A stretch of 63,533 bases of DNA, the filler included, from Octopus bimaculoides (Eukaryota): assembly GCF_001194135.2 (NCBI RefSeq). It is 6 parts of 6 records of this genome, joined end to end, with 100 filler letters (N's around TTAATTAATTAA, not from the genome) between each part and the next. Parts side by side here need not be neighbours in the genome. Positions count along the whole stretch, not along the records: positions 1 to 15,812 come from NW_026398593.1; 5 more parts are not named here. One strand, written 5' to 3'. Shown here in pieces: positions 1 to 25,361 of the stretch. A program made the translations under genes and the position numbers. Below the pieces are notes generated by a model that was given only the letters and a program-made list of their open reading frames with translations, searched no databases and was not told the DNA's origin. The first letter of the stretch is position 1; every line of letters starts with the position of its first letter.

Positions 1-290
1 GTGAGTAGATTTGGTAGACGGAAACTAAAAGAAGCCCGTCGTATATATGTATATATATATATGTGTGTGTGTGTTTGTGTGTCTGTGTTTGTCCCCTCCA
101 ACATCGCTTGACAACCGATGCTGGTGTGTTTACTTCCCCGTAACTTAGCGGTTCGGCAAAAGAGACCGATAGAATAAGTACTAGGCTTACAAAAGAATAA
201 GTCCTGGGGGTCGATTTGCTCGAATAAAGGCGGTGCTCCATCATGGCCGCAATCAAATGACTGAAACAAGTAAAAGAGTAAAAGAGTAAT
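1..290 (+). mobile_element. 3' part of tRNA-derived SINE (family A, carries an internal TA/TG microsatellite)
   Basis: Same sequence (gtagacggaaact...gtccccc..catcgcttgacaaccgatgctggtg...ggcggtgctccagcatggcc..gactgaaacaagtaaaaga) recurs at 17670-18490 (-), 58060-58275 (+) and partly at 41150-41280, 56710-56770 and 62393-62970. Confidence 0.85.
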
Positions 291-627
291 TACATGGAAA
301 GGAAAGCAGAAATCGCTGCGATCGTATCTTCATCTGAATACTGGGAAATATTACATAACAAGACCTCGTCTGACTACAATTGGTGAATATGTTTATATAA
401 CAGATATAGATAACAATATTTACCAAATACCTGGAAATATTAAAGAGCTAACATCTGAAGATACTGAAATCCTGAGATGTGAAGATTATCCAAAATATTT
501 AATCCTCAGGAACTATGAAAATGAAGTCTACCAACTTCTTGGTTTTGATGTTTCAGAAAATTCTTACATGATTTTTGGAATTATTCCAGGACGTCAATCG
601 GTTGCTTTCTTTCATTATGACAAATAA
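289..627 (+). pseudogene. Stop-free coding-like frame (3' end of a gene, 5' side interrupted by a SINE); weak resemblance to NHL/beta-propeller blades
   Basis: Hand translation: ITWKGKQKSLRSYLHLNTGKYYITRPRLTTIGEYVYITDIDNNIYQIPGNIKELTSEDTEILRCEDYPKYLILRNYENEVYQLLGFDVSENSYMIFGIIPGRQSVAFFHYDK*, TAA at 625-627 overlapping AATAAA. Non-repetitive, AT-rich and open for >110 codons. Absent from the ORF track because there is no early start codon. Confidence 0.45.
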
Positions 628-653
628 ATATTTTCATAAATATTCAAATTTGA

Positions 654-753
654 TCTTCTTCTTCTTCTTCTTCTTCTTCTTCTTCTTCTTCTTCTTCTTC
701 CTTTCATTCTTCTTCTTCTTCTTCTTCTTCTTCTTCTTCTTCTTCTTCTTCTT

Positions 754-843
<90 letters not shown>
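654..843. repeat. Compound (TTC)n(TTA)n microsatellite
   Basis: Directly visible. Confidence 0.98.
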
Positions 844-844
<1 letters not shown>

Positions 845-1460
845 TGGAGTATGTTAGTGAGTTTGTCTATCTTGGAAACAAGATCAGCAAATCAGGTGGA
901 TCAGACGAGGACGTCACTGCAAGAAGCAAGAAGGCTTGGCAAGCCTTCGCTATTCTTCGGCCAGTATGGAAGTCCACTGCCATCTCAACTCGAACTAAAC
1001 TCCGCTTATTTAGTTCAAACGTAAAATCTGTGCTTTTGTATGGCTCTGAAACATGGGGAGCCCCCTGCAGCAACTACAAGAAGATCCAGACCTTCATCAA
1101 CAAATGTCTCCGGCAGATCCCCTATCTGAAGTGGTTCGACAGAGTGCCAAACACCGACCTGCGGGAAAGGGCCAACCAGGAGCCCATACATGTTCAGATT
1201 AGACGAAAGAAATGGAGATGGATCGGACACACACTGCGGAAAGAACCCTCAAACGTGACACGACAATCACTTGACTGGAACCCGCAGGAGAAAAGGAAGC
1301 GAGGACGCCCGAAGCAGACATGGAAGCGGAGCATTTTGGACGAGCTCAGGACCACCGGCCTGACATTTGATGCAGCCAAGAAATACGCCAATGACCGCAA
1401 GAAGTGGAAAATAACTGTTGAGGCCCTATGCTCCAGAAGGGGCAGAAAGGATTAAAAAGA
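844..1460 (+). mobile_element. 5'-truncated RTE-clade LINE (RT thumb/C-terminus)
   Basis: ORF 844-1455 has FVYLG, LLYGSETW, RRKKWRWIGHTLRK and WNPQEKRKRGRPKQTW, typical of RTE ORF C-termini. Frame uninterrupted. Confidence 0.9.
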
Positions 1461-1464
1461 AGTT

Positions 1465-3035
1465 CTTTACTGCTACTTATTGAAACCAATGTGGGCGCTT
1501 CTCGGTAGCCTTAGTCTTCTGTCATAATTCCATTCACATAGAGGATGTTTTATAGGAATACTAGCAAATGCACCCGTCCTCTGGACGGTGTAATTATTGA
1601 AATGGTGCACTCCCGTGGGCGGTTTAAGTTGAATTAGCCCGCAGTTAGAAACCGCTTCAAGTTGATAAGCGTCAAATGTGTAATTACCATTTCCATTGCG
1701 ACTGTCATCTTCCAAGCTAAACTCTGCAAATTTAAATTTTACAAACCACTTTTGAATAGTTGATTCACCTACAGCGTCATCACTATAAACTTCACAAATG
1801 TTTTTGCAAGTTTTTGCAGCATTTTCTTCTTTTTCGAAAAAAAAAAAAAAAAAAGAGAGAGAAGCATTACAATGCGAATAATAAATTTTTAGTTATCCAT
1901 TTCAAATGTCAATAAGGGGCAATCGAGATGCATGATAAGTCTATTTTTAGTCAGGAACAAAAAAAAAAAAAGGCGATCTTTCGATACTAGTCCACCACAA
2001 CTTCCGGTCATTGCGCGCACGCATACTGATTACATGATCGTATAGTGAGTTTATGTGTTTAAAGTTTCAGTTCGGATGGCACCTTACTCNNNNNNNNNNN
2101 NNNNNNNNNNNNNNNNNNNNNNNNNNNNNNNNNNNNNNNNNNNNNNNNNNNNNNNNNNNNNNNNNNNNNNNNNNNNNNNNNNNNNNNNNNNNNNNNNNNN
2201 NNNNNNNNNNNNNNNNNNNNNNNNNNNNNNNNNNNNNNNNNNNNNNNNNNNNNNNNNNNNNNNNNNNNNNNNNNNNNNNNNNNNNNNNNNNNNNNNNNNN
2301 NNNNNNNNNNNNNNNNNNNNNNNNNNNNNNNNNNNNNNNNNNNNNNNNNNNNNNNNNNNNNNNNNNNNNNNNNNNNNNNNNNNNNNNNNNNNNNNNNNNN
2401 NNNNNNNNNNNNNNNNNNNNNNNNNNNNNNNNNNNNNNNNNNNNNNNNNNNNNNNNNNNNNNNNNNNNNNNNNNNNNNNNNAAAAAAAAAAAAAAAAACA
2501 ACCCAGAATGCACTGCAACTTCAAGCAATGCCAAAATTTTAACTGTGTCACATTTCAGGTGTGTTCAATGAAGCGTTTAAAGATTTAGCTTAAAAACGCT
2601 CAAAACTTCCTGAACAACCTAATACATCCAGAATGTTTTATAGGAATATGAAATCAAAAGCCACTACTTAACTGCTGCTTATATAAACCAATGAGGGAGC
2701 CTCTAGGTAGTATTAGTCTTCTATTACAATTCTATTCAAATCTAGGATGTTTTATAGGAGTACTAAATAAACCCCAGTAAATAGCTGCTACTTATACAAA
2801 CTAATGTGAGGGAGTCTAGGTACACTTAGTCCTCTATTATAATTCTACTGACATCTACGATGTTTCAATGGAATATTAAATCAAGGCCAGTACTTAACTG
2901 CTATTTATATACATCAATGAAGGAGCCTCCGGGTATTCTTAGTCTTCAATTATAATTCCTTTCACAGCCAGGATGTTTTATAGGAATATTAAATCAACGC
3001 CAGGTCTTTACAATTACTTATACAAACCAATGTAG
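1465..3035. repeat. Degenerate ~113-114 bp tandem repeat, interrupted by an insertion and a gap
   Basis: Motif gatgttttataggaat recurs near 1543, 2633, 2747, 2860 and 2973; spacing 114/113/113 bp in the right-hand block. Confidence 0.8.
1561..1590 (-). mobile_element. Helitron-like 3' terminus
   Basis: Minus strand reads cacCGTCCagaGGACGggtg-catttg-CTAG|T: a GC-rich hairpin a few nt upstream of CTAG followed by T, the canonical Helitron 3' end. The 5' end is not found (may lie in the 2090-2481 gap). Confidence 0.55.
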
Positions 3036-3227
3036 GTGTTTCCTGACACCCAGATCATGCTTAGGGACATTTGCAATTCTCGTTTTTGGTGAAACATTGC
3101 AAACTAGTGTTTATATTAATTTTAAATATACACATTATCAAAACACTAAATCATCCAATTATTTGCATGGCGAAAACAAAAATACTAATGGCGAAGCGAG
3201 TCCTGAAAGAGCCGAACATTCGAGCCG

Positions 3228-3280
3228 TCTTAACTGATGAGGCAACGAAAATTGCCGAAACCGATGCGTCAGTATTAAGA
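3228..3280 (+). ncRNA. Type I hammerhead-ribozyme-like motif (minimal, Penelope/retrozyme type)
   Basis: tcttaa-CTGATGA(3234-3240)-GGCAA cgaaaa TTGCC-GAAA-C cgatgc G-TC|agta-ttaaga. Intact core, 5-bp stem II, 2-bp stem III, GUC site; stem I pairs only with a 4-nt bulge. Confidence 0.65.
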
Positions 3281-3755
3281 ATCCTCGATCGATACTTTTC
3301 GGGTGGTTATTATCCCTGTTAATGTATATGCTTTTTTATTTATGTGCGTTAACGGCAGCATTGACGGTCACACTGAGAATTTGCGGACATTTACGTATGT
3401 AAATGGTAACAATGAAACTATGGTATGTGGCTGATCATTATATTTTGTATCTTTTCATTTGTCTTGCTCGCTTTACGTTCTGGCGTTTTGCTGAATTTTC
3501 TTGAGAACAATTTTTCTTAGTGGTCAGACCATATGGGGTCTACATTTAGCATATCAGGAGTCCACCTAGTGGTAATTCCTCTTATATATATGTGATATAA
3601 GTTCCTGAATCTTCAGATTTTTTCAATATGTTAGGCCACTGGTTTTAATTTTTACCCTTATTATTTAAATTTATATATACATATATACATATACAAATAT
3701 ATTTCATACATATATATGTATATATATATTAATACATACATGTATATATATTCTA

Positions 3756-3802
<47 letters not shown>

Positions 3803-4312
3803 AATATATATATATATACGTATATACATATATATATATGCATACATATATATGCGTATATNNNNNNNNNNNNNNNNNNNNNNNNNNNNNNNNNNNNNNN
3901 NNNNNNNNNNNNNNNNNNNNNNNNNNNNNNNNNNNNNNNNNNNNNNNNNNNNNNNNNNNNNNNNNNNNNNNNNNNNNNNNNNNNNNNNNNNNNNNNNNNN
4001 NNNNNNNNNNNNNNNNNNNNNNNNNNNNNNNNNNNNNNNNNNNNNNNNNNNNNNNNNNNNNNNNNNNNNNNNNNNNNNNNNNNNNNNNNNNNNNNNNNNN
4101 NNNNNNNNNNNNNNNNNNNNNNNNNNNNNNNNNNNNNNNNNNNNNNNNNNNNNNNNNNNNNNNNNNNNNNNNNNNNNNNNNNNNNNNNNNNNNNNNNNNN
4201 NNNNNNNNNNNNNNNNNNNNNNNNNNNNNNNNNNNNNNNNNNNNNNNNNNNNNNNNNNNNNNNNNNNNNNNNNNNNNNNNNNNNNNNNNNNNNNNNNNNN
4301 NNNNNNNNNNNN

Positions 4313-6162
4313 NCACTTTTCTTGAAACGTTACTTTTAAAGTTACATCCTTAATAAAACACTCGACCTTTGATTTTAATATTACGTAATAACTACCTTTC
4401 TCTGGACTTTCCATCAAAATTTTCTGGTTTGTCCCGGGCTTGTTTGATCGCCATTTTGTCAAATGCTCACTGCAGCCGAGTTTCTTGTAGCAAACAAAGA
4501 GATCCGCTTCTCCCATGCCATCAAAAGTAACAATTTTCACATTCTTCAATTGTGACTTTATCTTCAGTTTAAACATGATTTCTTCTTCAGGGACCGCACT
4601 TAATCCCTCGATTTTCGAGTTCTGGTGTACTGTTCGGATGTATGAAGACAGATGACATACTTTTATACCAACCTTTCTAAAAACTCTCTCTACAGGTTTA
4701 GTGTCATAGCCAAAGTCATAAGCGGACTTCATGAAGTCACAAGCGGCCTCAACGAAAGTAGTTGACGGATGCCAGTAGAAACGATTGGAATGAGCTGCAG
4801 TCTTCAAAACCTTTTTCGTACCCCATCCTTTCCGTCTGCTTAATAGACAGTAAAACCTGTTGAATACCCCACTGAGGTAGTGGACGTCCATACCATCATT
4901 GTAGTCGCCAGCATGTATGATCGACATCCCGTCAGTTGATTGGTTACACACGTTGCGAATTGGATTCGTAGCAACGTCCTCTCCAATTTCCCACTCGTTA
5001 GTCCCTTCTCTACCTAAGAACTTTTCGGCTGCCTCTCCAGCCAAGTCACTGAACGATTCATCGATACCACCCGACTGCCCCTCGTATATCAAGCCCGAAT
5101 GTTCCTCGGTGAAGCAATGGCTTATTTCGTGTGCAATGATATCAAGACTTACTAGCGGCCGATACTCGCTGTTGCCGTCACCAAACGTGAAGTTTTTTCC
5201 ATTGTAAAAAGCATTCACTACGTTTTGGCCATAGTGTACACGGAGAACGATTGGCAGCTCTTTCACCGGAGATACTTTCACCCATTCTCTGTACATATTG
5301 TAGACGATGTTGCCATAGAAAACAGCATCGTTTATCGGAGAATAAGCTCCGTTCACTTCGTCCTTCACACCAGTGTTGCATTTGACATTATAGACATTTC
5401 CTGCCTCATTAGGCAGAAACTCTTCCCCATTCAGATTCACCACTGTGACGATGTCGTTCCCGAAATAACAATCATCGCCTTCACGTGTCACTTCCAAATA
5501 TGGTAGTACTTCTCCGTATCTCAATTTACCTATCAATTTGTTACCTCCGATACCTTTCATTTTGTATTTGTTTCTTGTAGTTTCTAGTGTGTTCCATTTT
5601 TTAACAAGCGTTTCATTATTCGCATCGATTATCATGCAAAATCGATAATTTTTTCCATCAGATACGGCATAATATTGAATTCGATAAACCAGGATTCCTA
5701 CGTCGTCCTTCACGAAGATCATCAATTGAGGTTTATTGTAGTCTATGCGGGCCCCTTCCATAGAAAAGTGGCCGTAATCGACAGCTAATTGCATCGCCTG
5801 CTGCTCGTTCAAATTTGGTATTGTAGAGTTGATGTCATCATCAAGGTTCTGAACCAGTTTACCAGTCACCTGACCAGTGTACACATCGGTTTTGGCGTCT
5901 GTCTCCACAGTGAGGCTGGCATCAAACACCGGAAGTCCTCCATAAGTCTCGCTGTATTTTTTGATGTTGGTTCCTTGCTCACTCGGTGCTGAGTCCACTA
6001 GCTTGATGTCCTCGTCCTTGGTCAGACCGAACAGGTCACGTGTGGTGATCATGTGACTTGGTTGTCGCTTCATTGTCTCGCTCAGGTTATCCACATTCGA
6101 CAGGAACACATCCCTGGCCTGTCGCCATTTTGCTGACGTCACAACGTGGCTCCCCAGGAACG
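4313..6162 (-). CDS. Exon 2 of secreted M4-family zinc metalloprotease (vibriolysin/LasB-like): propeptide, catalytic domain, PPC-like C-terminal domain
   Basis: Motifs GIGGNKLIGKLRYG, NGAYSPINDAVFYG, VHYGQNVVNAFYNG..TFGDG, AHEISH (HExxH at 5131-5117), GGIDESFSDLAGEAAE (third Zn ligand E), DVHYLSGVFNR (catalytic His) and GEADLFV..GSYYVILKS..VTLKVTF (PPC-like). Acceptor TTTCTAG|CG at 6163/6162. The last codon before the N-gap is TGN (4315-4313), probably TGA. Confidence 0.95.
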
Positions 6163-6731
6163 CTAGAAAGATAATAATAATAATGTTAACAACAGCAACA
6201 AACAACAACAACAACAATAATAATAATAATAGATATAAAAGATGGCCTACAGCAAATATTCTGCTCAATACCACAGATTTGCTTGTCAGTTGTTTGACCT
6301 TAACCAGTTGAGCATGTCCCTTAGTGGCTGACGATATGTGCATCTCTGATCATGAGCAGAAGTAGTGGGGGAGCATCATAGCCATGTGCTGAGAGGTAGT
6401 CTTTGGGGTTTGAATAATTCGCCTTTGGAAATATGGGTGTTTTGCTCAACATCCTTATACAAACCTTATTCAGGGACCTTTTGAGCGGGATGGGCTACTT
6501 GACCTGAAGAAAATTCTAACTGGGCCTCACTTGCAAAGGTCATGCGCTGTTTATCTTGATAGGAGATCACCATGTCGCGCACATGTAGTTGTGATGCATG
6601 TGCCTGATGTACCCTTATCAGACGGGTAGTCATGATGGGTATAATGGGCTTCGTACATTTTACCCTAGTGTCACTTTGATGGCAAGCACTGCTCTCTCAC
6701 TCAATAATAATAATAATAACAATAATGATAA

Positions 6732-7080
6732 TGTAGTAACGCCGTGCTCATGCGTAGTCTCACGCATGCGTGGAATTCAACAACCAAGCTTTCCCGCTTC
6801 TATTCTGTCTCTTTCTTGCTGGCCAGCGATTGAGCATGGACGTGTTTAGCTGTCTCTCTCCATCTTTCGAACTTACGCTCGACAGCTCGCTTACGTCCCA
6901 ACAACTATGCTCACACACACAGAAGCTGTAACAACAAACAAGAGCTAAAGATGTATATATTTACCACCTGAATAAATGTTGTATAAGTTGATAGTCTGGA
7001 GTTCAGCGTTCCGTTAATTTTTAATTTTATATAGGAAAGTCAGGTATACATCTAATGATGTATAACCCACTTTCCTATAA
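6732..7080 (+). mobile_element. Unclassified ~350-bp LTR-like repeat, copy 1
   Basis: Starts TGTAGTAAC, contains AATAAA, ends in a ~50-nt hairpin (TATAGGAAAGT...ACTTTCCTATA). Homologous inverted copy at 7601-7956. Confidence 0.75.
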
Positions 7081-7094
7081 TAATATCAATAATG

Positions 7095-7133
<39 letters not shown>

Positions 7134-7134
7134 G

Positions 7135-7260
7135 GTGTATATGAAAAGAAAGAATGGTGGCACAGGACTGAGAACATTGTTTAATGAGTGAAAGGAGAAC
7201 GCTTGTTGAGTATTTGATCAATAGTGACGAAGATCAGCTGTAATATACCGGGGTCATATT
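7135..7260 (+). mobile_element. Short fragment of an R4-like LINE RT-thumb region
   Basis: aaaagaaagaatggtggcacaggact matches aggaaagaaagaatggtggcagaggact near 10371-10398 (RKxGGRGL motif). Confidence 0.55.
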
Positions 7261-7600
7261 ATTATTGATGATTTTAAATACTACAGGAAGAACGATTGGG
7301 ATAAGGGTAATCACTGTGGTTATGGAGGCGAACACAATGCAAGCGCGTTATTTATATACATGTGTATGCACATACTATCGTGCGTGTATATACAAATAAA
7401 GAGAGGAAGAGAGAGATGGGATCTCATAACAACTCTCGTGAGAAGTGAACGAACGACTCATGAAATCACGATGCAATGCAGCAAGGAAAGTATTAACGGC
7501 GAGAATGGAGCTGTAGGAATGTTGGTTATCGGTTATATAGAAATAGTTGTTATTGTAGCTCAGCGGGCTGCGTGTTTGAATCACGTCGGAGGGTCACCGG

Positions 7601-7956
7601 TTATAGGAAAGTGGGTTATACATCATTAGATGTACACCTGCTTTCCTATATTAAATTAAGATATGAACGGTACGCAGAACTCCAAACTATCAACTCAACA
7701 ATATTTATTCAAGGTGGAATATATACAGCTTTACTCTTGGTTGTTGAGACGTCTTCTGTTTGTGAGAACATGGTTGCTGAGACATCGGTATGTTGATGTG
7801 AGCTGTCTGGCGTGAGATCGAAAGATGAGAGAGACAGCTTGACACGTCCATGCTCAATCGCTGGCCAGCAAGAAAGAGACAGAATAAAGAGGGGAAACGC
7901 TTGGATGTTGAATTCCACGCATGCGTGAGACTACGCATGCGCACGGCGTTACTACA
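7601..7956 (-). mobile_element. Unclassified ~350-bp LTR-like repeat, copy 2 (inverted relative to copy 1)
   Basis: Its reverse complement begins tgtagtaacgccgtgc.catgcgtagtctcacgcatgcgtggaattcaac and ends ctttcctataa, as in copy 1. Confidence 0.75.
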
Positions 7957-7959
7957 GAG

Positions 7960-10700
7960 CTATAGCCGGTCATGGTGAATGTTTCCCGCCCGGCACGTCC
8001 GAAACCGCCCGCACCAGGGGCAGTGATCTGGCCTCGGACGGTCGTTATGTCGCAACAGATCACATACACGGTGTGCGCAAAAACAGCCATAAGTGGACGA
8101 AGGAAGAGTATGATACGCTTATTGAATGTCATGGAAGAGCGAAGTTGGAAAGAAGCCGCGGATTAGGCCGACGTACCTTGAAATTTTGGATGGAAAAGGA
8201 CACGTGTCCGATGTCAGAAAACAAACTAATGAACCAAGTGAGAGTGGTTAGGAGGAAGGGTTACTTAACTGGAGTAGAAGTATCTCGGATTCGTGAGAGT
8301 CTGAGAGACCCTCAAACGATGGTCGGAGTTGAAAACAGAGAGGTAGGAGTTGAAAGCAGGGAGAAGAGTAGGCAGAAGGAAGAGGAGAATGAAGATGGGG
8401 CTGTTAATGATGGGGAACAGGAATGTTATACAGTGAACCCTGATACTGTGGTGGGTGGACATGCAGGGGAAACGAACCAACTGGATAATGAATTGTTTGA
8501 AATTCAAAGACGACTCACCGAGTTGATGAAGAAAAAATCCCCCTGAATATGAAAAGGGTAGACAAGAGCGTGATAAATAAAGTAACACAAAAGATAAATG
8601 CTGTCATACCATACATCCAGACGGAGGACATCACACAAACATGGAATCTTCTCCGAGCCATTGCGCTGCTTGTTGAGGAGAAATTACAGCTTAAGGGAAC
8701 AAAAAATGGTGGAGCAAAAGAACCATGGTGGAAACGACGCATTGAAAGGGACATGATGCGGGAAAGGCAAGATCTAGGAAAAATTGAGAAATGGTTAAGA
8801 GGAAACTGGAAAAATGGGGAAAAGACCGACTGAGAAAAATTAGAGAAGAAATATAAAATACGAAAGAACGGGTTTGATGAAGTAATAGAGCAGTTAAAAC
8901 AGAGGATCATGGCAAAAAGCCAGAAGATCAGAAGATTTGTGAACAGAAAGAAGCAGTTCGAGGAGAACAGTTTGTTCAAAACTAACCCGAAGCAATTCTT
9001 ACGAACGTTAGAAGGAGACAATGGGGAAAATGTTGCTCCTGATGCAAATCAAGCCAAGGAGTTCTGGAGCGGATAATGGGGAAACAATGTGGTGCATAAA
9101 AGGGATGCAATGTGGATAGGAACTATCAAGACAGAATTACAAGGAGGAAACAAGCAAAGGAATATTGTCATAGGCACGGGTGATGTGAAAGAACAAGTGG
9201 GTAAAGTGCCTAAATGGAAAGCCCCCGGACCAGATGGGATTCATGGCTTCTGGCTGAAGAGATGCCATGCGGTGAATGGAAGACTAGCAGCCCAATTGAA
9301 TGAGCGTGTCCAGAAAGGTACAGTCCCTGCGTAGATGGTGACTGGGAGGACAACACTTGTAATGAAAGATAGAAGAAAGGGGAATATTGTGGCAAACTAC
9401 CGTCCCATAGTATGCCTAAACATAATCTGGAAGATGTCACTGGAATATGTGCGGAAAAGACATATACATTCCTGGTACAGGAAGAAATACTACCAAGGGA
9501 ACAAAAAGGATGTAGGAAGAGTTCTCAGGGTACCAAAGATTACCTGGTCATCGATAAAACAGTTTTCAGGTATTGTAAAAAAACATCTATGGCTTGGATT
9601 GACTTTAAGAAGGCATATGTTATGATGCCTCATTCTTGGATCGTTGAATGCCTGCAGATGTTTGGCGTTGCTGACAACACCACAAATTTTCTGATGCATA
9701 GCATGAAAGAGTGGAAAACCAAATTGTAAAGTAATGTATTCCTGGGAGAAGTTAATATTAAAAGGGGAATCTTCCAAGGTGACTTGTTTTTTTCCCTTAC
9801 TATATGTAATTGCACTAATACCCATAACAATGACCCTTAGGAAAGTTAAGATGGGTTACCGATGTGAGAAGAAAAGCCCATCATTGAACCATCTTCTGTT
9901 TAGGGATCACCTGAAATTGTTTGGGAAATCTGAAAAACAGATAGATTCCTTAACCGAAACAGTCCAGAAGTGTGGTAGGGACATCGGTATGGAATTTGGG
10001 ATGACCAAATGCTCAGTGCTTAATATGGAAAGAGGGAAGGAAGCAGCCTGCAGGGGATTTCGGTTACCACCAGAAGTGACCATGGGTGAATCGGACGGTA
10101 ATATTTAGGGATTTTGGAGCTGGATGACATTCTACACGGAGAAATGAAAGTCAAGGTCAGCGAGGCGCATCAAAAACGGGTGAAGATGGTGTTGAAATCC
10201 GACCTGAATGCCAAAAATTTGACTACCACAATGATTATCTGGGCAGTTGCAGTGGTCAGATATAGAGCGTCCATCCTCAAATGGACTAAGGAGGAAATAT
10301 CAACACTGGACAGAAGGACGAGAAAATTGATGACACTGCATGGGTTGCTAACCCGAAAGCAAACTTAAACAGGAAAGAAAGAATGGTGGCAGAGGACTAA
10401 TTAGTGGATGTGAGAGCCTTGCACAAAGCGCCGCCACGATAAAGTGTATGTATCTTCATTGGCTCTTATGCCGTAAATACCAATATGAAGTAGCAGAGAA
10501 CTGGTATGAGTATGTACCAAGTAAAGTTATGCAGGAGGATGGAAAAGTACTGTCAGATCATTGATGTAGCCACACCAAATGACATGAATGTTGTGAGTAA
10601 AGGGGTTGAAAAAAAATCGCCAAGGACTCCGAATTGAAAGTGGAAATGGTAAGACTGTATGGAGGGTCAAAGTTGGGAACAAAACAGGAGAGTTGAGACT
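7960..10700 (+). mobile_element. Decayed near-full-length R4/Dong-like non-LTR retrotransposon (RT plus restriction-like endonuclease), antisense within the protease intron
   Basis: Broken frames give HKWTKEE (N-terminal Myb-like), EPWWKRRIE, KWKAPGPDGIHGFWLK, NYRPIVCL, EQKGCRK, AWIDFKKAY, LNHLLFRDHLKLF, and a REL tail RRHDKV...IIDVATPNDMNV. Multiple stops and frameshifts. Confidence 0.85.
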
Positions 10701-10870
10701 TACAAGGAAACCGAACGAAAACAGACATGGAGAACGACGGGAAAATAGTGAACGCTGCGAGAAATAGTTTCTTGGAAAAGGGAAAAGATAGAAGAGGAGA
10801 AGAGAGAAGACGTCCAGTCCTTAGAACGTTCGAATAGGAAAAGAAAGATAGACGATGGTCATGTGTGAGC

Positions 10871-10920
<50 letters not shown>

Positions 10921-11765
10921 AGAAAGCGGGAGAGAGANNNNNNNNNNNNNNNNNNNNNNNNNNNNNNNNNNNNNNNNNNNNNNNNNNNNNNNNNNNNNNN
11001 NNNNNNNNNNNNNNNNNNNNNNNNNNNNNNNNNNNNNNNNNNNNNNNNNNNNNNNNNNNNNNNNNNNNNNNNNNNNNNNNNNNNNNNNNNNNNNNNNNNN
11101 NNNNNNNNNNNNNNNNNNNNNNNNNNNNNNNNNNNNNNNNNNNNNNNNNNNNNNNNNNNNNNNNNNNNNNNNNNNNNNNNNNNNNNNNNNNNNNNNNNNN
11201 NNNNNNNNNNNNNNNNNNNNNNNNNNNNNNNNNNNNNNNNNNNNNNNNNNNNNNNNNNNNNNNNNNNNNNNNNNNNNNNNNNNNNNNNNNNNNNNNNNNN
11301 NNNNNNNNNNNNNNNNNNNNNNNNNNNNNNNNNNNNNNNNNNNNNNNNNNNNNNNNNNNNNNNNNNNNNNNNNNNNNNNNNNNNNNNNNNNNNNNNNNNN
11401 NNNNNNNNNNNNNNNNNNNNNNNNNNNNNNNNNNNNNNNNNNNNNNNNNNNNNNNNNNNNNNNNNNNNNNNNNNNNNNNNNNNNNNNNNNNNNNNNNNNN
11501 NNNNNNNNNNNNNNNNNNNNNNNNNNNNNNNNNNNNNNNNNNNNNNNNNNNNNNNNNNNNNNNNNNNNNNNNNNNNNNNNNNNNNNNNNNNNNNNNNNNN
11601 NNNNNNNNNNNNNNNNNNNNNNNNNNNNNNNNNNNNNNNNNNNNNNNNNNNNNNNNNNNNNNNNNNNNNNNNNNNNNNNNNNNNNNNNNNNNNNNNNNNN
11701 NNNNNNNNNNNNNNNNNNNNNNNNNNNNNNNNNNNNNNNNNNNNNNNNNNNNNNNNNNNNNNNNN

Positions 11766-11833
<68 letters not shown>

Positions 11834-11838
11834 ATCCA

Positions 11839-11869
<31 letters not shown>

Positions 11870-11872
11870 CTA

Positions 11873-11947
<75 letters not shown>

Positions 11948-12079
11948 ATCTATCTATTTGCAAATATAGACACATACATAAATTCATATGCAATTACATA
12001 CAAACCTATGCACAAATTTCTGCATACACACACTCATATACAAACAGATACAAACTTAGAAAATATAGGTTTAACTCAC

Positions 12080-12128
12080 CGAATAATATAACAAAAAGGA
12101 AGCGAATCCCAACGCTACGGGCAGCCAT
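12080..12128 (-). CDS. Exon 1 (signal peptide) of the M4 protease
   Basis: Minus strand gataATGGCTGCCCGTAGCGTTGGGATTCGCTTCCTTTTTGTTATATTATTCG|GTGAGT = MAARSVGIRFLFVILF + G. Good Kozak context (A at -3, G at +4), consensus donor, and phase 1 matching the exon 2 acceptor. Confidence 0.8.
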
Positions 12129-12293
12129 TATCTTTCTCTCCCTCTGTCACACTGGTCGGTCGAAAGTGGAAAACAGCAGCAAGTGGTCAAGTACAGCCAC
12201 TACAGAGACGAAATAGTGGACTTTCACACAGGAAACAGCTATAATAGTAACCAGAGACAAACATCCGAGGCAGCCGAATTTTTAGGTGGTGGA

Positions 12294-12550
12294 CCTTATA
12301 TGTAGTTGAGGGCTGGGCCACACTGTGAGGTCTTTCAGTCTGTCAGGGAGAGAAAGAGCCAGAGAGGACGCCCTTGCTGTGAAAGAGTGTAACCTCACAC
12401 TCGAGTTATGAGACTTTTGATCTAAGTGTTTGCTTTTATATGAGTGGAGAAGCGAATGGAGAGGTTTGCAGATGGACGAAAACAGACAACAATGTCGCTC
12501 TCTGCCTGTCCCAACTCGCGTTCTCTCCCTCATACTCCCCCCCCGCCTCC
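12294..12550 (-). promoter_or_regulatory. Candidate promoter of the M4 gene
   Basis: ATATAAGG (TATA-like) at 12301-12294 on the minus strand, about 170 nt upstream of the ATG; GC-box-like ccccgcctcc at 12541-12550; non-repetitive sequence. Motif-only inference. Confidence 0.3.
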
Positions 12551-12787
12551 CTACTTCCATCGACGCTGTCTGTCGTCGCGTAATCATCTTGTTTCGCCTC
12601 GTTAATCAAGTATTATTCAAAATTAAACAAATATTTTCTTCACAAACAAACTATTCATCCCATGTTCTAGAACAAACTCACAGACACACAACCCCCCCAC
12701 ACACAAACATACACACACACGCACACAAACATGCACACACACATGCACATATGTATATAATCATACATGCTGCATATATTAATTAAT

Positions 12788-12834
<47 letters not shown>

Positions 12835-13397
12835 NNNNNNNNNNNNNNNNNNNNNNNNNNNNNNNNNNNNNNNNNNNNNNNNNNNNNNNNNNNNNNNNNN
12901 NNNNNNNNNNNNNNNNNNNNNNNNNNNNNNNNNNNNNNNNNNNNNNNNNNNNNNNNNNNNNNNNNNNNNNNNNNNNNNNNNNNNNNNNNNNNNNNNNNNN
13001 NNNNNNNNNNNNNNNNNNNNNNNNNNNNNNNNNNNNNNNNNNNNNNNNNNNNNNNNNNNNNNNNNNNNNNNNNNNNNNNNNNNNNNNNNNNNNNNNNNNN
13101 NNNNNNNNNNNNNNNNNNNNNNNNNNNNNNNNNNNNNNNNNNNNNNNNNNNNNNNNNNNNNNNNNNNNNNNNNNNNNNNNNNNNNNNNNNNNNNNNNNNN
13201 NNNNNNNNNNNNNNNNNNNNNNNNNNNNNNNNNNNNNNNNNNNNNNNNNNNNNNNNNNNNNNNNNNNNNNNNNNNNNNNNNNNNNNNNNNNNNNNNNNNN
13301 NNNNNNNNNNNNNNNNNNNNNNNNNNNNNNNNNNNNNNNNNNNNNNNNNNNNNNNNNNNNNNNNNNNNNNNNNNNNNNNNNNNNNNNNNNNNNNNNN

Positions 13398-14086
13398 TAC
13401 AGGCACAACAGAAACAGGAAGTAAGAGCGAGAGAAAGTTGTGGCGAAAGAGTACAGCAGGGTTCGCCACCATCCCCTGCCGGGGGCCTCGTGGGGCTTTT
13501 AAGGCGGCGAGCTGGCCGAGACCTTAGCACACCGGGCGAAATGCTTAGCGATATTCGTCTGTCTTTACGTTCTGAGTTCAAATTTCTCCGAGGTCGACTT
13601 TACCTTTCATCCTTTTGGGAGCGATAAATCAAGTACCAGTTGCGTACTGGGGTCGATCTAATCGACTGGCCCCTCCTCCCCAAAAATTTCGGGCCTTGAG
13701 CCTAGAGTACAAAAGAATAAACCATATATTTGACTCGACCGGAAAGTTATCAAGCATTTCTCCTGGACAATTAACATTTTATTAAATGTTAACAAATTCC
13801 AAAGTATAGCTTGTTATGTATATTGGGAAACACTAATTACCAGTAATTTTATAATTTGTTTTACTTCATCACAGTTATAGATAAATCTGTGTCCATCTTT
13901 TCCTTCGATTTCTTTCAATTAGTTCACGGCCATTTGGCTACCATTGGTTAACCATCCTCTGGCGGACCCTCACGGAGCTTTAGGTGTTTTCGCTCAATAT
14001 AAACACTCACAACGCCCGGTCTGGGAATCGAAACCGCGATCCTATGACCGCGAGTCCGCTTCCCTAACCACTGGGCCATTGCGCCT

Positions 14087-14090
<4 letters not shown>
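13398..14090 (-). mobile_element. tRNA-derived SINE (family C) split by an inserted family B SINE and ~230 bp of other sequence
   Basis: Head on the minus strand GTGGAGGCGCAATGGCCCAGTGG...GGTTTCGATTCCC (A/B boxes) at 14090-14020; body at 13398-13500 matches the copy at 22519-22850. Confidence 0.8.
13503..13720 (+). mobile_element. tRNA-derived SINE family B
   Basis: ggcggcgagctggc...gagttcaaatt...ggtcgactttacctttcatcc...aagtaccagttgcgtactggggtcgat; roughly ten related copies in the window. Confidence 0.9.
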
Positions 14091-14143
<53 letters not shown>

Positions 14144-14165
14144 CACATACATACGCACATATATA

Positions 14166-14470
14166 CAGGGTGTCCCAAAAAGATGTACTCACTCTTTGAC
14201 TTCCCAGCACTCATGCATTTTGTGTTCAAGTAGATGTTTATATTGATATACATACAATACTAAAAAGTTAAATTAAATTCAGGAAAATAAATTGTTGTAG
14301 AAACGATTATTTATTGTCATTTAGAATTATTTAACGTTCTCTCTCATTCCTGCGTGTTCACAAATGTTCAAACTGCCTTTCTTTCATTTTCCAAACAAAG
14401 CTGATAACGTCCAACAATGGATTCGACAACATTGCCAAACATTTCATTTGGAATTGCAAGACATTGTATA
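14166..14470 (-). mobile_element. Tc1/mariner terminus with transposase C-terminal remnant
   Basis: TA|CAGGGTGTCCCAAAA terminal motif; minus-strand frames end ...ERQFEHL*, typical of Tc1/mariner C-termini. Confidence 0.6.
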
Positions 14471-14477
14471 TATAGAG

Positions 14478-15190
14478 GATATATAGAAACGTGGAGACGT
14501 TGTGCATCTGCAACACGAGTTGAATGCAATATATAGGTGGACTGAGGAAAATAACCAGCACTTAAATGCTGGAAAATTGCAAGTTCGGTGCTACCAACAC
14601 AGGGATCTTAATGAAGTGCAGATTGGATACAGTGGCCCAAGTGGGTTTCCAAACCGCCAATCAAAACCAGTGTGTGACCTGGGAATCAACATGAGTAATG
14701 ATGTATCCTCTCGGGTGCACATTACCAAGTTGGCAATAAAATGCGGACGTCTGGTTGGGTGGATCCATCGAGCTTTCAAAACAAGAGAAACGGAACCATG
14801 ATGATACTCTGGAGGACTTACATTGGCAGCCGTCTGGATTCCTGCTACCAATTGTGGCCACCAAACAGTGTAAAATTAACGACGGAACTCGAGGTAATCC
14901 AGTGAAGCTACATAAAGAAGATCGACGCAATGCGACATGTCAGCTATTGGGAGAGACTGAAAGAGTTAAGATCAACTCCCTGACGCGATGGCGGGAGAGA
15001 CATGCCGTAATATACACCTGGAAAATCGTAGAAAATCCTGTTCCAATCTTTGGCATTGTCACTTAGACAAACAGCAGGACGGGACGCTAGTATATGGTAC
15101 CAAAATTCCAACATTGCCATCTCCAAAGCAGTTAACAAAATATCTAAAAACAAAAATTCTCTACATCCAAGTTAACAAAGAAGTTACTAG
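14478..15190 (+). mobile_element. CR1-clade LINE 3' fragment (decayed)
   Basis: HLQHELNAIYRWTEENN, CDLGINMSND, RLVGWIHRAFKTRE, YWERLKEL and IYTWKIVE across shifted frames. Confidence 0.8.
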
Positions 15191-15812
15191 ATCTTTGAGC
15201 TAAAATTTATGTCAGTAAAAAATAAAAATAATAATAATAAATTAAACTGATTAGAACTACCTGTGAAGTACAACTGCACCAAGGATCTCACACATTTTCC
15301 AACACATCTTTTATTCAGACAGAGTGAATTAGTAACCATAGTTGTTGTTTAGCCCCAGGTCAGTCTTGATCCAGACAGGCCTAGGATCAAAGATGTTCCA
15401 TTTGTGACCATCGCCTCTTTTATTCAGGCACTGTGTATCTAGGACTACATTATATAATGTATCGCATAGGAGTCGGTCGCCATCTTGCCGCTATTAACTC
15501 GTTATACATTAATCTTTCATAAATATTTTCTGTCGTTAATTAGTTTGAAACTATGTCATTAAATTCCCACCAATTTGGGGTTTGTATTTTATTGACGAAG
15601 TTAGTGTGAATTGGGTCAAAAGGTTTCATCTTGCTTTTGCTGTTGGTGGCGGCGCTGGTGGAAGCAGCAGTCGCAGCGGTGATGGCGATGGCAGAGGCGG
15701 CGGTGGTGGTGCACACCGTTTTGTGTGTGTATACATGGGTCTCTATGTGTGGCTGCACAAGCGTTGCTGGGGGCACAAACACAGACACAAACACACACAC
15801 ACACACACAGAT

Positions 15813-22850: not shown

Positions 22851-25361
22851 TCCAATGAGAAAAAAAAAAGAGAGAGAAGTTAAAATAAAAGATATTCTTG
22901 TAATGCCCCCTTTATCCACGTCCCTGTGGATAATAAAAGGAGTCATCATTATCGAATCCCCGGACGAAATGCCGCTAAACATTCTATCCTTTCTTAATTT
23001 ATGAGTNNNNNNNNNNNNNNNNNNNNNNNNNNNNNNNNNNNNNNNNNNNNNNNNNNNNNNNNNNNNNNNNNNNNNNNNNNNNNNNNNNNNNNNNNNNNNN
23101 NNNNNNNNNNNNNNNNNNNNNNNNNNNNNNNNNNNNNNNNNNNNNNNNNNNNNNNNNNNNNNNNNNNNNNNNNNNNNNNNNNNNNNNNNNNNNNNNNNNN
23201 NNNNNNNNNNNNNNNNNNNNNNNNNNNNNNNNNNNNNNNNNNNNNNNNNNNNNNNNNNNNNNNNNNNNNNNNNNNNNNNNNNNNNNNNNNNNNNNNNNNN
23301 NNNNNNNNNNNNNNNNNNNNNNNNNNNNNNNNNNNNNNNNNNNNNNNNNNNNNNNNNNNNNNNNNNNNNNNNNNNNNNNNNNNNNNNNNNNNNNNNNNNN
23401 NNNNNNNNNNNNNNNNNNNNNNNNNNNNNNNNNNNNNNNNNNNNNNNNNNNNNNNNNNNNNNNNNNNNNNNNNNNNNNNNNNNNNNNNNNNNNNNNNNNN
23501 NNNNNNNNNNNNNNNNNNNNNNNNNNNNNNNNNNNNNNNNNNNNNNNNNNNNNNNNNNNNNNNNNNNNNNNNNNNNNNNNNNNNNNNNNNNNNNNNNNNT
23601 ATAAGGAAGGGTTGCCGGTGGTGGTGGTGGTGGCGGTGGTGGTGGCGGCGGCGAGTATTGGCGTGAGTGACGGAGTGGCGAAGGATTGGCAGCGATGTGG
23701 GTAGGAGAATGTAGGACACTGAAACTTGATATGAAGCACAATGTTCTCATAAACTCTAAAATATCACGAAGCATATGGATAGTGCACATACACACACCCA
23801 CACACCCACACATACACATACATGGACACAGGCGCATACACACGCGCGCAACATACACATGCAGGCACACACACACACACACACACACATGACATACAGT
23901 CACCCACGCTCCAACTAGTCACATACACACTTATGAAGGCTCTATCAGTGATGTAAATAATGTAGATATGCACACAGATCACAAATACGTACACACACAC
24001 ACACACACACACACACGCGCGCACGCATAGACACACACACACATACGTACACAGACACACACACATTCCTTGCTCCAGATTCGTAGCAGAGTTATGCAGA
24101 TTGACCCGGAAGTCGGCATCCTCCTATAATTTGTTTAGCCTGCTGTTATAGATTGCTATCTCATCAGTATGTTGTTATCGCGACACGGCCCTGTGCAGAA
24201 GATGGAGAAGAAGATACCTCGGCGTCTCGGCGCCCTTCCGCGTTGGCCGCTGGCGGTGGGAGCACTGAGAGGGCTGCGATTCTGTTAGTCTGAGCATCAT
24301 CGAAGCCCCACTCGGCATAATCGTGGAAACAGCAACAACCATGGTCGTGCACCTCGACCATCTCAGAAGCTGTTTATCGCTATTCCTTCCTCTGTTTTTC
24401 TCGTCTTCTTCGTCTGAGCAGGAGACCCTAAAAAATGGGGNNNNNNNNNNNNNNNNNNNNNNNNNNNNNNNNNNNNNNNNNNNNNNNNNNNNNNNNNNNN
24501 NNNNNNNNNNNNNNNNNNNNNNNNNNNNNNNNNNNNNNNNNNNNNNNNNNNNNNNNNNNNNNNNNNNNNNNNNNNNNNNNNNNNNNNNNNNNNNNNNNNN
24601 NNNNNNNNNNNNNNNNNNNNNNNNNNNNNNNNNNNNNNNNNNNNNNNNNNNNNNNNNNNNNNNNNNNNNNNNNNNNNNNNNNNNNNNNNNNNNNNNNNNN
24701 NNNNNNNNNNNNNNNNNNNNNNNNNNNNNNNNNNNNNNNNNNNNNNNNNNNNNNNNNNNNNNNNNNNNNNNNNNNNNNNNNNNNNNNNNNNNNNNNNNNN
24801 NNNNNNNNNNNNNNNNNNNNNNNNNNNNNNNNNNNNNNNNNNNNNNNNNNNNNNNNNNNNNNNNNNNNNNNNNNNNNNNNNNNNNNNNNNNNNNNNNNNN
24901 NNNNNNNNNNNNNNNNNNNNNNNNNNNNNNNNNNNNNNNNNNNNNNNNNNNNNNNNNNNNNNNNNNNNNNNNNNNNNNNNNNNNNNNNNNNNNNNNNNNN
25001 NNNNNNNNNNNNNNNNNNNNNNNNNNNNNNNNNNNNNNNNNNNNNNNNNNNNNNNNNNNNNNNNNNNNNNNNNNNNNNNNNNNNNNNNNNNNNNNNNNNN
25101 NNNNNNNNNNNNNNNNNNNNNNNNNNNNNNNNNNNNNNNNNNNNNNNNNNNNNNNNNNNNNNNNNNNNNNNNNNNNNNNNNNNNNNNNNNNNNNNNNNNN
25201 NNNNNNNNNNNNNNNNNNNNNNNNNNNNNNNNNNNNNNNNNNNNNNNNNNNAACATTCATGAAAGCTGTATCCATGACAAAAAGTGGATATCATTCGCAA
25301 AAGGCTTTCCATACATGGGTGAGGATTACTTCGAGATACATGTATCTAAAATAAAACTCGG

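Follow-up and report, generated by a model that had tools for sequence, protein, structure and literature searches.

How an octopus came to encode a secreted protease of bacterial type, from which source and how long ago, is the question raised by a gene at positions 4,313 to 12,128 of a 63,533-nucleotide stretch of Octopus bimaculoides DNA, here called the window (RefSeq assembly GCF_001194135.2; six parts of six records joined by filler, the first, positions 1 to 15,812, from NW_026398593.1). An initial annotation took the gene for a vibriolysin-like M4 metalloprotease acquired by the octopus lineage from a marine gammaproteobacterium. Our analysis confirms that the window holds a real, intact, two-exon O. 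bimaculoides gene for what its sequence predicts to be a secreted zinc protease. In our judgement this gene, already published as ZnMP7, probably encodes a secreted M4 enzyme that entered animals by one transfer from a bacterium before the mollusc radiation and is not specific to cephalopods.

The gene lies on the minus strand in two exons, 12128-12080 and 6162-4316. Spliced together, their 49 nt and 1,847 nt give a coding sequence of 1,896 nt, exactly 632 codons, and translation of the spliced coordinates shows that the exons join in frame and in phase 1, with the split codon G+CG encoding Ala17. This reproduces the 632-codon product first proposed, with its HEISH, ESFSD and DVHY.SGVFNR motifs. 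The features of the locus, several of which are placed by comparison with the O. bimaculoides paralogue ZnMP1 (protein P0003, 75% amino acid identity; locus L008), are as follows.

12129..12460, minus strand: 5′ untranslated region (UTR) and putative promoter, conserved among octopod paralogues and orthologues
12080..12128, minus strand: exon 1, 49 nt; start codon, 16 signal-peptide codons and 1 nt (MAARSVGIRFLFVILF+G)
6163..12079, minus strand: single intron, phase 1, 5,917 nt as assembled, interrupting the signal peptide
10938..11765, no strand: assembly gap, 828 N, wholly inside the intron
4316..6162, minus strand: exon 2, 1,847 nt, intron-free, residues 17-632
5891..6010, minus strand: FTP (fungalysin/thermolysin propeptide) motif, residues 68-107, within the ~190-residue N-terminal propeptide
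4664..5530, minus strand: M4 catalytic domain (Peptidase_M4 and Peptidase_M4_C), residues 228-516
4316..4627, minus strand: diverged PPC (pre-peptidase C-terminal) beta-sandwich domain, about residues 529-632
4313..4315, minus strand: probable stop codon, TG+N (TGA?), placed by alignment to the ZnMP1 TAA at the edge of gap 3862-4313

Exon 1 (ATG GCT GCC ... TTA TTC G), an ATG followed by a hydrophobic run, lies about 5.9 kb upstream of exon 2 on the same strand and ends at the donor G/GTGAGT, with GTGAGT at 12079-12074. Exon 2 opens behind a pyrimidine tract at the acceptor ...tatctttctAG/CG, encodes everything from the last part of the signal peptide through propeptide and catalytic domain to the PPC-like domain, and is part of the longest open reading frame (ORF) of the window, which runs on the minus strand into the N gap at 3862-4313. 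The earlier claim that the whole 1,847-nt proenzyme exon (6162-4316) is free of introns holds. The ~330 nt upstream of the ATG, which include TATA-like elements (TATAAGG at 12300-12294 and TATAAAAG at 12440-12433), are conserved at 75% mean column identity in a three-way alignment of the window gene, ZnMP1 (L008) and the Octopus sinensis gene (L010). The NCBI model P0001, 'elastase [O. bimaculoides]', is 100% identical over the 632-residue spliced product and uses the same exon junction.

The intron contains an assembly gap, microsatellites, a degenerate long interspersed nuclear element (LINE) and a pair of inverted repeats. Because the gap, with a (GA)n run on one side (10874-10937) and a (CTAT)n run on the other (11766-11957), is wholly intronic, no reading frame crosses it. 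The two exons almost certainly belong to one locus: the stretch from ~130 nt of 5′ UTR through exon 1 into the beginning of the intron matches ZnMP1 at 86%, homologous loci are free of gaps at this point, and the NCBI model has the same junction. No N separates the signal exon from the big exon in the ZnMP1, O. sinensis or Argonauta locus, where it sits 2.5-6.2 kb upstream (2.46 kb in ZnMP1, L008, CM046607.1).

At the 3′ end, the M4 ORF reads '...CAA GAA AAG TG' and then N, at the edge of gap 3862-4313, and the TAA stop of ZnMP1 aligns exactly to this 'TG' plus the first N of the gap. Members of the family are 631-633 residues long, an Octopus vulgaris relative (P0002, 84% identity, 633 residues) ending in ...EEKR. 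Given the alignment to ZnMP1 and the lengths of the relatives, the stop is most likely TGA and the product 632 residues. P0001 is longer, at 712 residues; after ...FQE it splices into window 1715-1473 (minus strand), across gap 3862-4313, and its 80-residue C-terminal tail showed no counterpart in relatives and no Pfam match. This tail is probably a prediction artefact arising from the stop hidden at the gap edge. Three of the four gaps (3862-4313, 10938-11765 and 12835-13397) have a microsatellite ((TA)n, (GA)n or (CTAT)n) at one or both edges, and such microsatellite-edged gaps probably explain why the 88-kb scaffold is fragmented and unplaced.

What kind of enzyme does the gene encode? Judged from its sequence and an AF2 model (mean pLDDT 82.6), the product is a MEROPS M4 pre-pro zinc endopeptidase of the pseudolysin/vibriolysin branch, predicted to be secreted. 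Its layout comprises a signal peptide of ~26 residues, an FTP/PepSY propeptide of ~190, a catalytic domain of ~300 and a PPC domain of ~100, the propeptide-catalytic-PPC order of the initial annotation being borne out by Pfam, phmmer, hhalign and Foldseek alike. Peptidase_M4 scores 83.5 bits (cut-off 22.4) and Peptidase_M4_C 89.2 bits (cut-off 24.4). The sequence contains every expected active-site residue, namely the zinc ligands His361, His365 and Glu385, the general base Glu362, Tyr376 and His444: HEISH spans residues 361-365 (5131-5117, minus strand), ESFSD residues 385-389 (5059-5045, minus strand), Tyr376 lies in LIYEGQSGG (5092-5066, minus strand) and His444 in DVHYLSGVFNR (4888-4856, minus strand). 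The octopus protein thus carries both HExxH and the downstream ExxxD with its third-ligand Glu, which together characterise M4. Tyr376 and His444 align with LVYRGQSGG and DVHHSSG of pro-elastase; we take them to correspond to Tyr157 and His231 of thermolysin. None of the catalytic residues varies among 13 divergent members of the family, and the same is true of four cysteines.

The placement in the pseudolysin/vibriolysin branch comes from searches of the whole PDB and from structure. By phmmer, the best PDB match is pro-elastase 8cr4 (E 9e-84), followed by MCP-02, LasB and Legionella ProA, while thermolysin and bacillolysin match only at E 1e-25 or weaker. With the AF2 model as query, Foldseek matched the mature vibriolysin MCP-02 at TMt 0.96 (rmsd 1.4 Å, 40% identity), LasB at 0.93-0.95 and thermolysin at ~0.80, consistent with the two-lobe thermolysin fold. 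The propeptide is recognised from three results combined: Pfam FTP scores 19.4 bits, just under its cut-off of 21; phmmer aligns residues 37-502 to residues 42-494 of pro-elastase 8cr4, propeptide included; and the propeptide chain 3nqz_A of MCP-02 is matched by the AF2 model at TMt 0.71. For the PPC domain, Pfam alone stays below threshold (E 0.2 in the octopus protein, 0.003-0.2 in five of six members), and membership is instead established by hhalign and Foldseek. An hhalign comparison of mollusc C-termini with bacterial PPC regions gave a probability of 98.4% (E 8.7e-15 over 99 columns), and Foldseek matched 5sv5, the PPC of Bacillus anthracis collagenase, at TMt 0.73, as well as the collagen-binding domains of ColG and ColH. 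The motif GMGEADLFV (4513-4493, minus strand) stands where PF04151 has G-x-G-D-x-D-L-[YF]-V.

Pseudolysin typically has two disulfides, Cys30-Cys58 and Cys270-Cys297 of the mature enzyme. The four cysteines that are invariant across the family are Cys248, Cys278 and Cys491, which align with pro-elastase cysteines, and Cys519, which lies just beyond the aligned region. Further cysteines appear within the family. In cephalopod genes and some genes of one subfamily (subfamily A, below), Cys366 (5116-5114) replaces the usual Gly after HExxH, giving HEISHC; Cys422 (4948-4946) and Cys455 (4849-4847), in the motifs R-x-x-C-[NDK]-[QP] and FYCLL, are also conserved in subfamily A and do not occur in the bacterial enzymes. 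These extra cysteines may form a disulfide or a free thiol next to the zinc site.

Has the gene been described before? Liu et al. (2018; PMC6011040, Data Brief, companion to Gene doi 10.1016/j.gene.2018.05.013) reported 12 O. bimaculoides genes of horizontal gene transfer (HGT) from a screen against bacteria, fungi, plants, protozoa and vertebrates. Seven of these are 'Zn-metalloproteinases', ZnMP1-7, nested among bacterial homologues, and reverse-transcription PCR (RT-PCR) products of ZnMP genes were obtained from hepatopancreas complementary DNA (cDNA). The published product for ZnMP7 (XP_014783435.1) aligns to window 4842-4583 (minus strand) over 257 of 260 bases, the ZnMP7 reverse primer occurs in the window, and the translated ZnMP1 product closely matches P0003. 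On this sequence identity the window gene is the published ZnMP7, XP_014783435.1, named 'elastase' at NCBI, and its bacterial ancestry was already on record in 2018; the candidate transfer of the initial annotation is not an unreported one. Table 2 of PMC6011040 lists one and the same sequence as forward primer of XP_014783435.1 and reverse primer of XP_014782361.1, and the two primers of XP_014767445.1 do not differ either; both duplications are likely typographical errors. Our literature search for M4 or thermolysin-type proteases in cephalopods, molluscs and abalone found nothing relevant beyond PMC6011040, and found no functional literature on the named mollusc homologues. A 2026 preprint on cephalopod venom mentions HGT only for an unrelated toxin family, and the main text of a 2026 compendium of metazoan HGT does not mention octopus.

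Is the gene really part of an animal genome? One could suppose that the 'spliced gene' is an artefact of annotation in contaminating bacterial DNA or a chimeric assembly, since the scaffold (LGKD02103728.1) is 88 kb long and unplaced, has four N gaps within 15.8 kb, one of them between the exons, and the big exon has no intron. We give this explanation a negligible probability on several grounds. First, the intron has canonical GT-AG signals and a polypyrimidine tract, and exon 2 directly adjoins animal repeats and a LINE. Second, the same two-exon structure, with the intron in the same codon and phase, is found in O. bimaculoides ZnMP1 (L008, chromosome CM046607.1), in O. sinensis (L010, a locus without N in a 15-Mb chromosome sequence) and in Argonauta hians (L009, a locus without N in a 29-Mb contig). 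Third, homologues sit in animal contigs of 15-110 Mb, two of them without N at the locus examined, and the neighbours at M4 loci and on the window scaffold are ordinary animal genes (Galactosyl_T, 2OG-Fe(II) oxygenase and EGF_CA, the EGF_CA gene being on LGKD02103728.1 itself). Fourth, composition is octopus-like (GC 43%, GC3 48%) and the upstream region is conserved among octopod loci. From the spliceosomal intron, the surrounding animal repeats and the homologues in contigs of 15-110 Mb, the sequence places the M4 gene as physically integrated in the animal genome.

These results uphold the initial annotation's view of a spliced gene in animal DNA. Its account of the repeats stands in part: microsatellites and degenerate LINE reverse-transcriptase fragments are present, but for the short interspersed nuclear elements (SINEs) it also named, scans of the window gave no transfer RNA (tRNA) or Rfam match. 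At the Argonauta locus (L009), two extra copies of the signal exon, at 23539-23592 and 24043-24096, lie 7-8 kb downstream of the gene with 83-89% amino acid identity to exon 1, which suggests either that M4 paralogues stand in tandem here or that first exons were duplicated on their own.

Integration does not by itself imply function, and the locus might be a decaying, non-functional copy within the octopod M4 family: there are multiple paralogues, the stop and the 3′ end are unsequenced, and the NCBI model needed an improbable extra exon. This is very improbable, however, because the 632-codon frame is uninterrupted with all catalytic residues intact, the splice sites and upstream region are conserved, and a near-identical cDNA fragment is in the literature (Liu et al. 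2018, PMC6011040). The ratio of nonsynonymous to synonymous divergence (dN/dS) is 0.20 against ZnMP1, at a synonymous divergence of 0.72, and likewise 0.20 against the O. sinensis gene; between Octopus and Argonauta, synonymous sites are saturated. The gene is kept under purifying selection.

Where did it come from? We searched 1.8 billion cluster representatives with HMMER and followed up with cluster look-ups; what is said of these searches refers to the top matches listed. Most of the 9,654 library matches appear prokaryotic. After the octopods, the nearest relatives are molluscs, not bacteria. They comprise a cephalopod gene (Sepia pharaonis 'hap', CAE1299313), bivalve genes (Ylistrum balloti, Pinctada imbricata with two genes, Ostrea edulis), gastropod genes (Haliotis spp. 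with two genes, Patella vulgata, Pomacea canaliculata) and a chiton gene (Liolophura sinensis). Across three database searches and two cluster look-ups, every named animal match among those listed is a mollusc. The closest non-animal relatives among them are all bacterial M4 proteins, mostly gammaproteobacterial and of FTP-M4-PPC architecture, in keeping with the label of a bacterial-type enzyme; the best bacterial matches come from Rhodanobacteraceae (Dyella, Luteibacter), Vibrio, Pleionea, Shewanella and Aeromonas, at 31-39% identity.

We built a midpoint-rooted neighbour-joining (NJ) tree, with a simple distance correction and no thermolysin-type M4 outgroup, on 446 columns covering the propeptide core and the catalytic domain; it comprised 233 sequences that were less than 80% identical to one another. 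All named animal sequences fall in one clade of 24 taxa (bootstrap 80/100), which splits into two subfamilies, A (99/100) and B (98/100). The window gene falls in subfamily A, together with other cephalopod genes and those of bivalves, and the octopod 'neutral protease' genes fall in subfamily B, alongside those of gastropods and the chiton and the second Pinctada gene. Because cephalopods and bivalves occur in both subfamilies, with the chiton in B, both the gene and its duplication are older than the split between the major mollusc classes. One subfamily-B member, the 'neutral protease' P0059 (L014, CM046611.1), has an internally duplicated propeptide segment and several N runs, and its gene model is probably mis-assembled or mis-predicted.

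This distribution bears directly on the acquisition first proposed, a recent one in the octopus or cephalopod lineage from a marine gammaproteobacterium of Vibrio, Pseudomonas or Aeromonas type. The layout and motifs are indeed those of vibriolysin and pseudolysin, and the best bacterial matches are Gammaproteobacteria. Yet the octopod genes cluster with bivalve, gastropod and chiton genes and with no bacterium (the clade with bootstrap 80), cephalopods and bivalves are present in both subfamilies, and the intron position is common to cuttlefish-like DNA and to more distant eukaryotic loci. Identity to the best bacteria, 31-39%, is about the same as that to bivalve proteins, 35-38%, and Octopus-Argonauta synonymous sites are already saturated. 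A recent acquisition of this kind is extremely improbable. Nor does any particular donor emerge: the mean NJ distance from the animal clade to individual bacterial sequences is 1.20-1.46 and nearly equal for all groups, and these near-equal distances resolve no specific source.

Could there have been no transfer at all, but vertical descent within an old M4 lineage of eukaryotes or metazoans that most animals have lost? The animal clade is distinct from all sampled bacteria, with an internal mean distance of 1.22 against 1.31 to bacteria, and a eukaryotic sister group, discussed below, has the same N-terminal motif and intron position. Against this stand the restriction of named animal matches to molluscs, the prokaryotic character of most library matches, the retention of the FTP-M4-PPC architecture (matches bearing a PPC domain were bacterial in the searches made) and the position of the protein inside bacterial M4 diversity, at E 1e-84 to the pseudolysin/vibriolysin branch compared with 1e-25 to thermolysin-type enzymes. 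We regard vertical descent as unlikely. The initial annotation had held that a broad, vertically inherited animal clade outside bacterial diversity would speak against a transfer; what we find goes part of the way towards that, being one clade across several mollusc classes, but confined to molluscs and some eukaryotic contigs and still within the pseudolysin/vibriolysin branch.

A bacterial source of the mollusc genes is supported by their greater closeness to pseudolysin and vibriolysin than to thermolysin, by their bacterial FTP-M4-PPC architecture and by the lack of named homologues in other animals among the matches listed. One transfer of a vibriolysin-type gene from a bacterium to an animal would have taken place before the mollusc radiation, or possibly further back, among lophotrochozoans. 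The signal peptide would then have acquired its intron, the gene would have duplicated long ago to give the two subfamilies, and individual lineages would later have expanded it in tandem, as in the octopod paralogues.

The intron offers a marker of this descent. An AG preceded by a pyrimidine tract occurs at the identical site, in phase 1 and 12 codons before a conserved Trp/Arg (A-[KR]-[WR]), in eight loci: four octopod loci, the cuttlefish-type locus L004, the eukaryotic contigs L001 and L003 (subfamily A) and one gene of L012. A scan for mini-exons (short, ATG-initiated, hydrophobic and in phase 1) recovered the signal exon in three of three octopod controls, and the same scan gave candidate signal exons 3.8 kb upstream in L001 and 1.8 kb upstream in L012. 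The conserved signal-peptide intron is usable as a marker of common descent. It does not bear out the earlier suggestion that the gene had 'gained a host signal exon': the signal peptide is interrupted by the intron, which could just as well have been inserted into a signal sequence present from the start.

The L012 gene belongs to a nine-sequence sister group of the mollusc clade, made up of gene-sparse, Mb-scale eukaryotic contigs of the European Nucleotide Archive (ENA) and several transcripts of the Siedleckia nematoides dataset. These sequences have an N-terminal motif and an intron position in common with the mollusc genes. A profile search with the nine sequences returned, among the matches listed, only ENA contigs, Siedleckia transcripts and bacteria. 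Siedleckia, the organism of the EukProt dataset, is a blastogregarine that parasitises polychaetes, and its M4 transcripts could be contamination from an annelid host or a separate acquisition by the parasite. More generally, the sister-group sequences (L011, L012 and the Siedleckia transcriptome) could belong to another phylum. M4 genes lie at L012 8001-10196 and 14890-17253, two in tandem, and at L011 8001-10082 (ENA ERZ25069853, ERZ25767047), with a longer, two-module C-terminal extension; the Siedleckia transcriptome holds at least five animal-type M4 paralogues (P0233, P0416-P0418 and P0421).

If the sister-group contigs are not mollusc, the family is wider than the phylum. This leads to a more extended proposal, in which the octopus gene is one tip of a phylum-wide, possibly lophotrochozoan-wide family that goes back to a single domestication of a vibriolysin-type gene before the Cambrian mollusc radiation, divided early into two subfamilies and has kept its intron and, in cephalopods, bivalves, gastropods and chitons, an intact active site, with a sister group that is perhaps annelid, as one member is from the transcriptome of a parasite of the polychaete gut. 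We find this proposal plausible, though a little short of probable. If it is true, this would be one of the oldest and most widely retained transfers of a bacterial protease into animals.

Several observations weigh against a single early transfer from a bacterium, or against parts of the account built around it. The animal sequences form their own long-branched clade with the midpoint root beside it, so nesting within bacteria, which Liu et al. reported for the ZnMPs (PMC6011040), is not seen in our NJ tree; that tree was made with a simple correction rather than by maximum likelihood and had no thermolysin-type outgroup. On the scaffold, the link between exon 1 and exon 2 spans an unsequenced gap, the scaffold itself, which probably belongs close to other M4 paralogues, is unplaced in a chromosome-level assembly, and the stop codon is only partly sequenced (TG + N). 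At the subfamily-B locus L014, which is riddled with N runs and internally duplicated, a homologous AG acceptor was not found. O. bimaculoides is a Californian species. The expression evidence is one RT-PCR report from market-bought animals, purchased at a Shenzhen market (PMC6011040). Finally, the digestive role, autoprocessing and substrate preference considered next are extrapolated from bacterial enzymes.

What might the enzyme do? By analogy with characterised bacterial homologues, the protein would be secreted as a zymogen whose propeptide, at once intramolecular chaperone and inhibitor, is cut off autocatalytically. Maturation would fall close to KMKGIGGN, a segment aligned to the N-terminal end of mature LasB, and the mature enzyme would cleave, in a zinc-dependent manner, before hydrophobic residues (a hydrophobic P1′ preference). 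The PPC domain might aid binding to insoluble protein substrates or be clipped off. Because the sole reported transcript comes from the hepatopancreas, extracellular digestion in the digestive gland is the most likely role; the salivary or venom function once considered found no support here, hepatopancreas cDNA being the only expression report, and the results speak neither for nor against salivary, venom or immune functions. The gene belongs to a multigene expansion in octopods that may contribute to extracellular digestion.

Other features of the window lie in or around the gene. Two inverted copies of an element of ~350 nt, at 6732-7080 and 7601-7956, sit in the intron ~570 nt upstream of the exon-2 acceptor, with arms that are 76-93% complementary; they may be SINE-like repeats, and a long hairpin in the pre-mRNA is possible. 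At 8073-10368 (plus strand), antisense to the M4 gene, a string of frame-shifted ORFs with weak RVT_1 matches has the sequence of a degenerate non-LTR (non-long-terminal-repeat) retrotransposon, a LINE inside the intron. An ORF of 203 residues at 844-1452 (plus strand), preceded by (TCT)n and (TTA)n runs, matches DUF6451 at 5e-18 and has a LINE C-terminal region of the '...KKWRWIGHTLRK...' type, which looks like the tail of another retrotransposon. Downstream of the M4 gene, at 2624-3033, a 113-bp unit is repeated in 3.6 tandem copies with 74% matches.

The locus itself adds little, as both the gene and its bacterial ancestry have been in print since 2018 and its NCBI annotation is 'elastase'. 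New here are the spread of the family over mollusc classes, its division into two old subfamilies, the conservation of the intron in the signal peptide and a correction to the C-terminal end of the public model. Purifying selection has apparently preserved an entire secreted bacterial protease cassette, from propeptide through catalytic domain to PPC, in several mollusc classes for over half a billion years, and readings of such genes as gifts of a 'recent marine Vibrio donor' can err by hundreds of millions of years.

Among known systems, the closest is the set of ZnMP1-7 genes of PMC6011040, which includes the same gene and came with the same conclusion of bacterial origin, but the paper is silent on the spread over mollusc classes, on the two subfamilies and on the conservation of the signal-peptide intron. 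The mollusc homologues carry a variety of names, 'hap' in Sepia, 'elastase-like' in Haliotis spp., Ylistrum balloti and Patella vulgata, 'virulence metalloprotease-like' in Ostrea edulis, 'neutral protease-like' in Liolophura sinensis and 'metalloprotease' in Haliotis discus hannai (AJF36072), and all share the clade and the architecture of the octopus protein. They are 35-50% identical, the gastropod and chiton genes belonging to subfamily B, and in Sepia-like contig DNA the acceptor position is the same as in the octopus gene. Among bacterial enzymes, LasB/pro-elastase of Pseudomonas aeruginosa (1ezm, 8cr4) has the HExxH, ExxxD, Tyr and His residues in common with the octopus protein, and three of the four invariant cysteines align. 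The octopus protein is ~39-40% identical to LasB and differs in its added C-terminal PPC-like domain, in Cys for Gly after HExxH and three further cysteines, and in its spliced gene and eukaryotic signal peptide. The vibriolysin-type enzymes, MCP-02 of Pseudoalteromonas (3nqx/3nqz), HapA and the ~610-residue proteins of Vibrio, Dyella and Luteibacter, have the same FTP/PepSY-M4-PPC architecture at ~600-630 residues. MCP-02 is the best structural match, its propeptide chain matching too; identity to these enzymes is 31-40%, and the animal PPC domain has diverged too far to reach the Pfam threshold.

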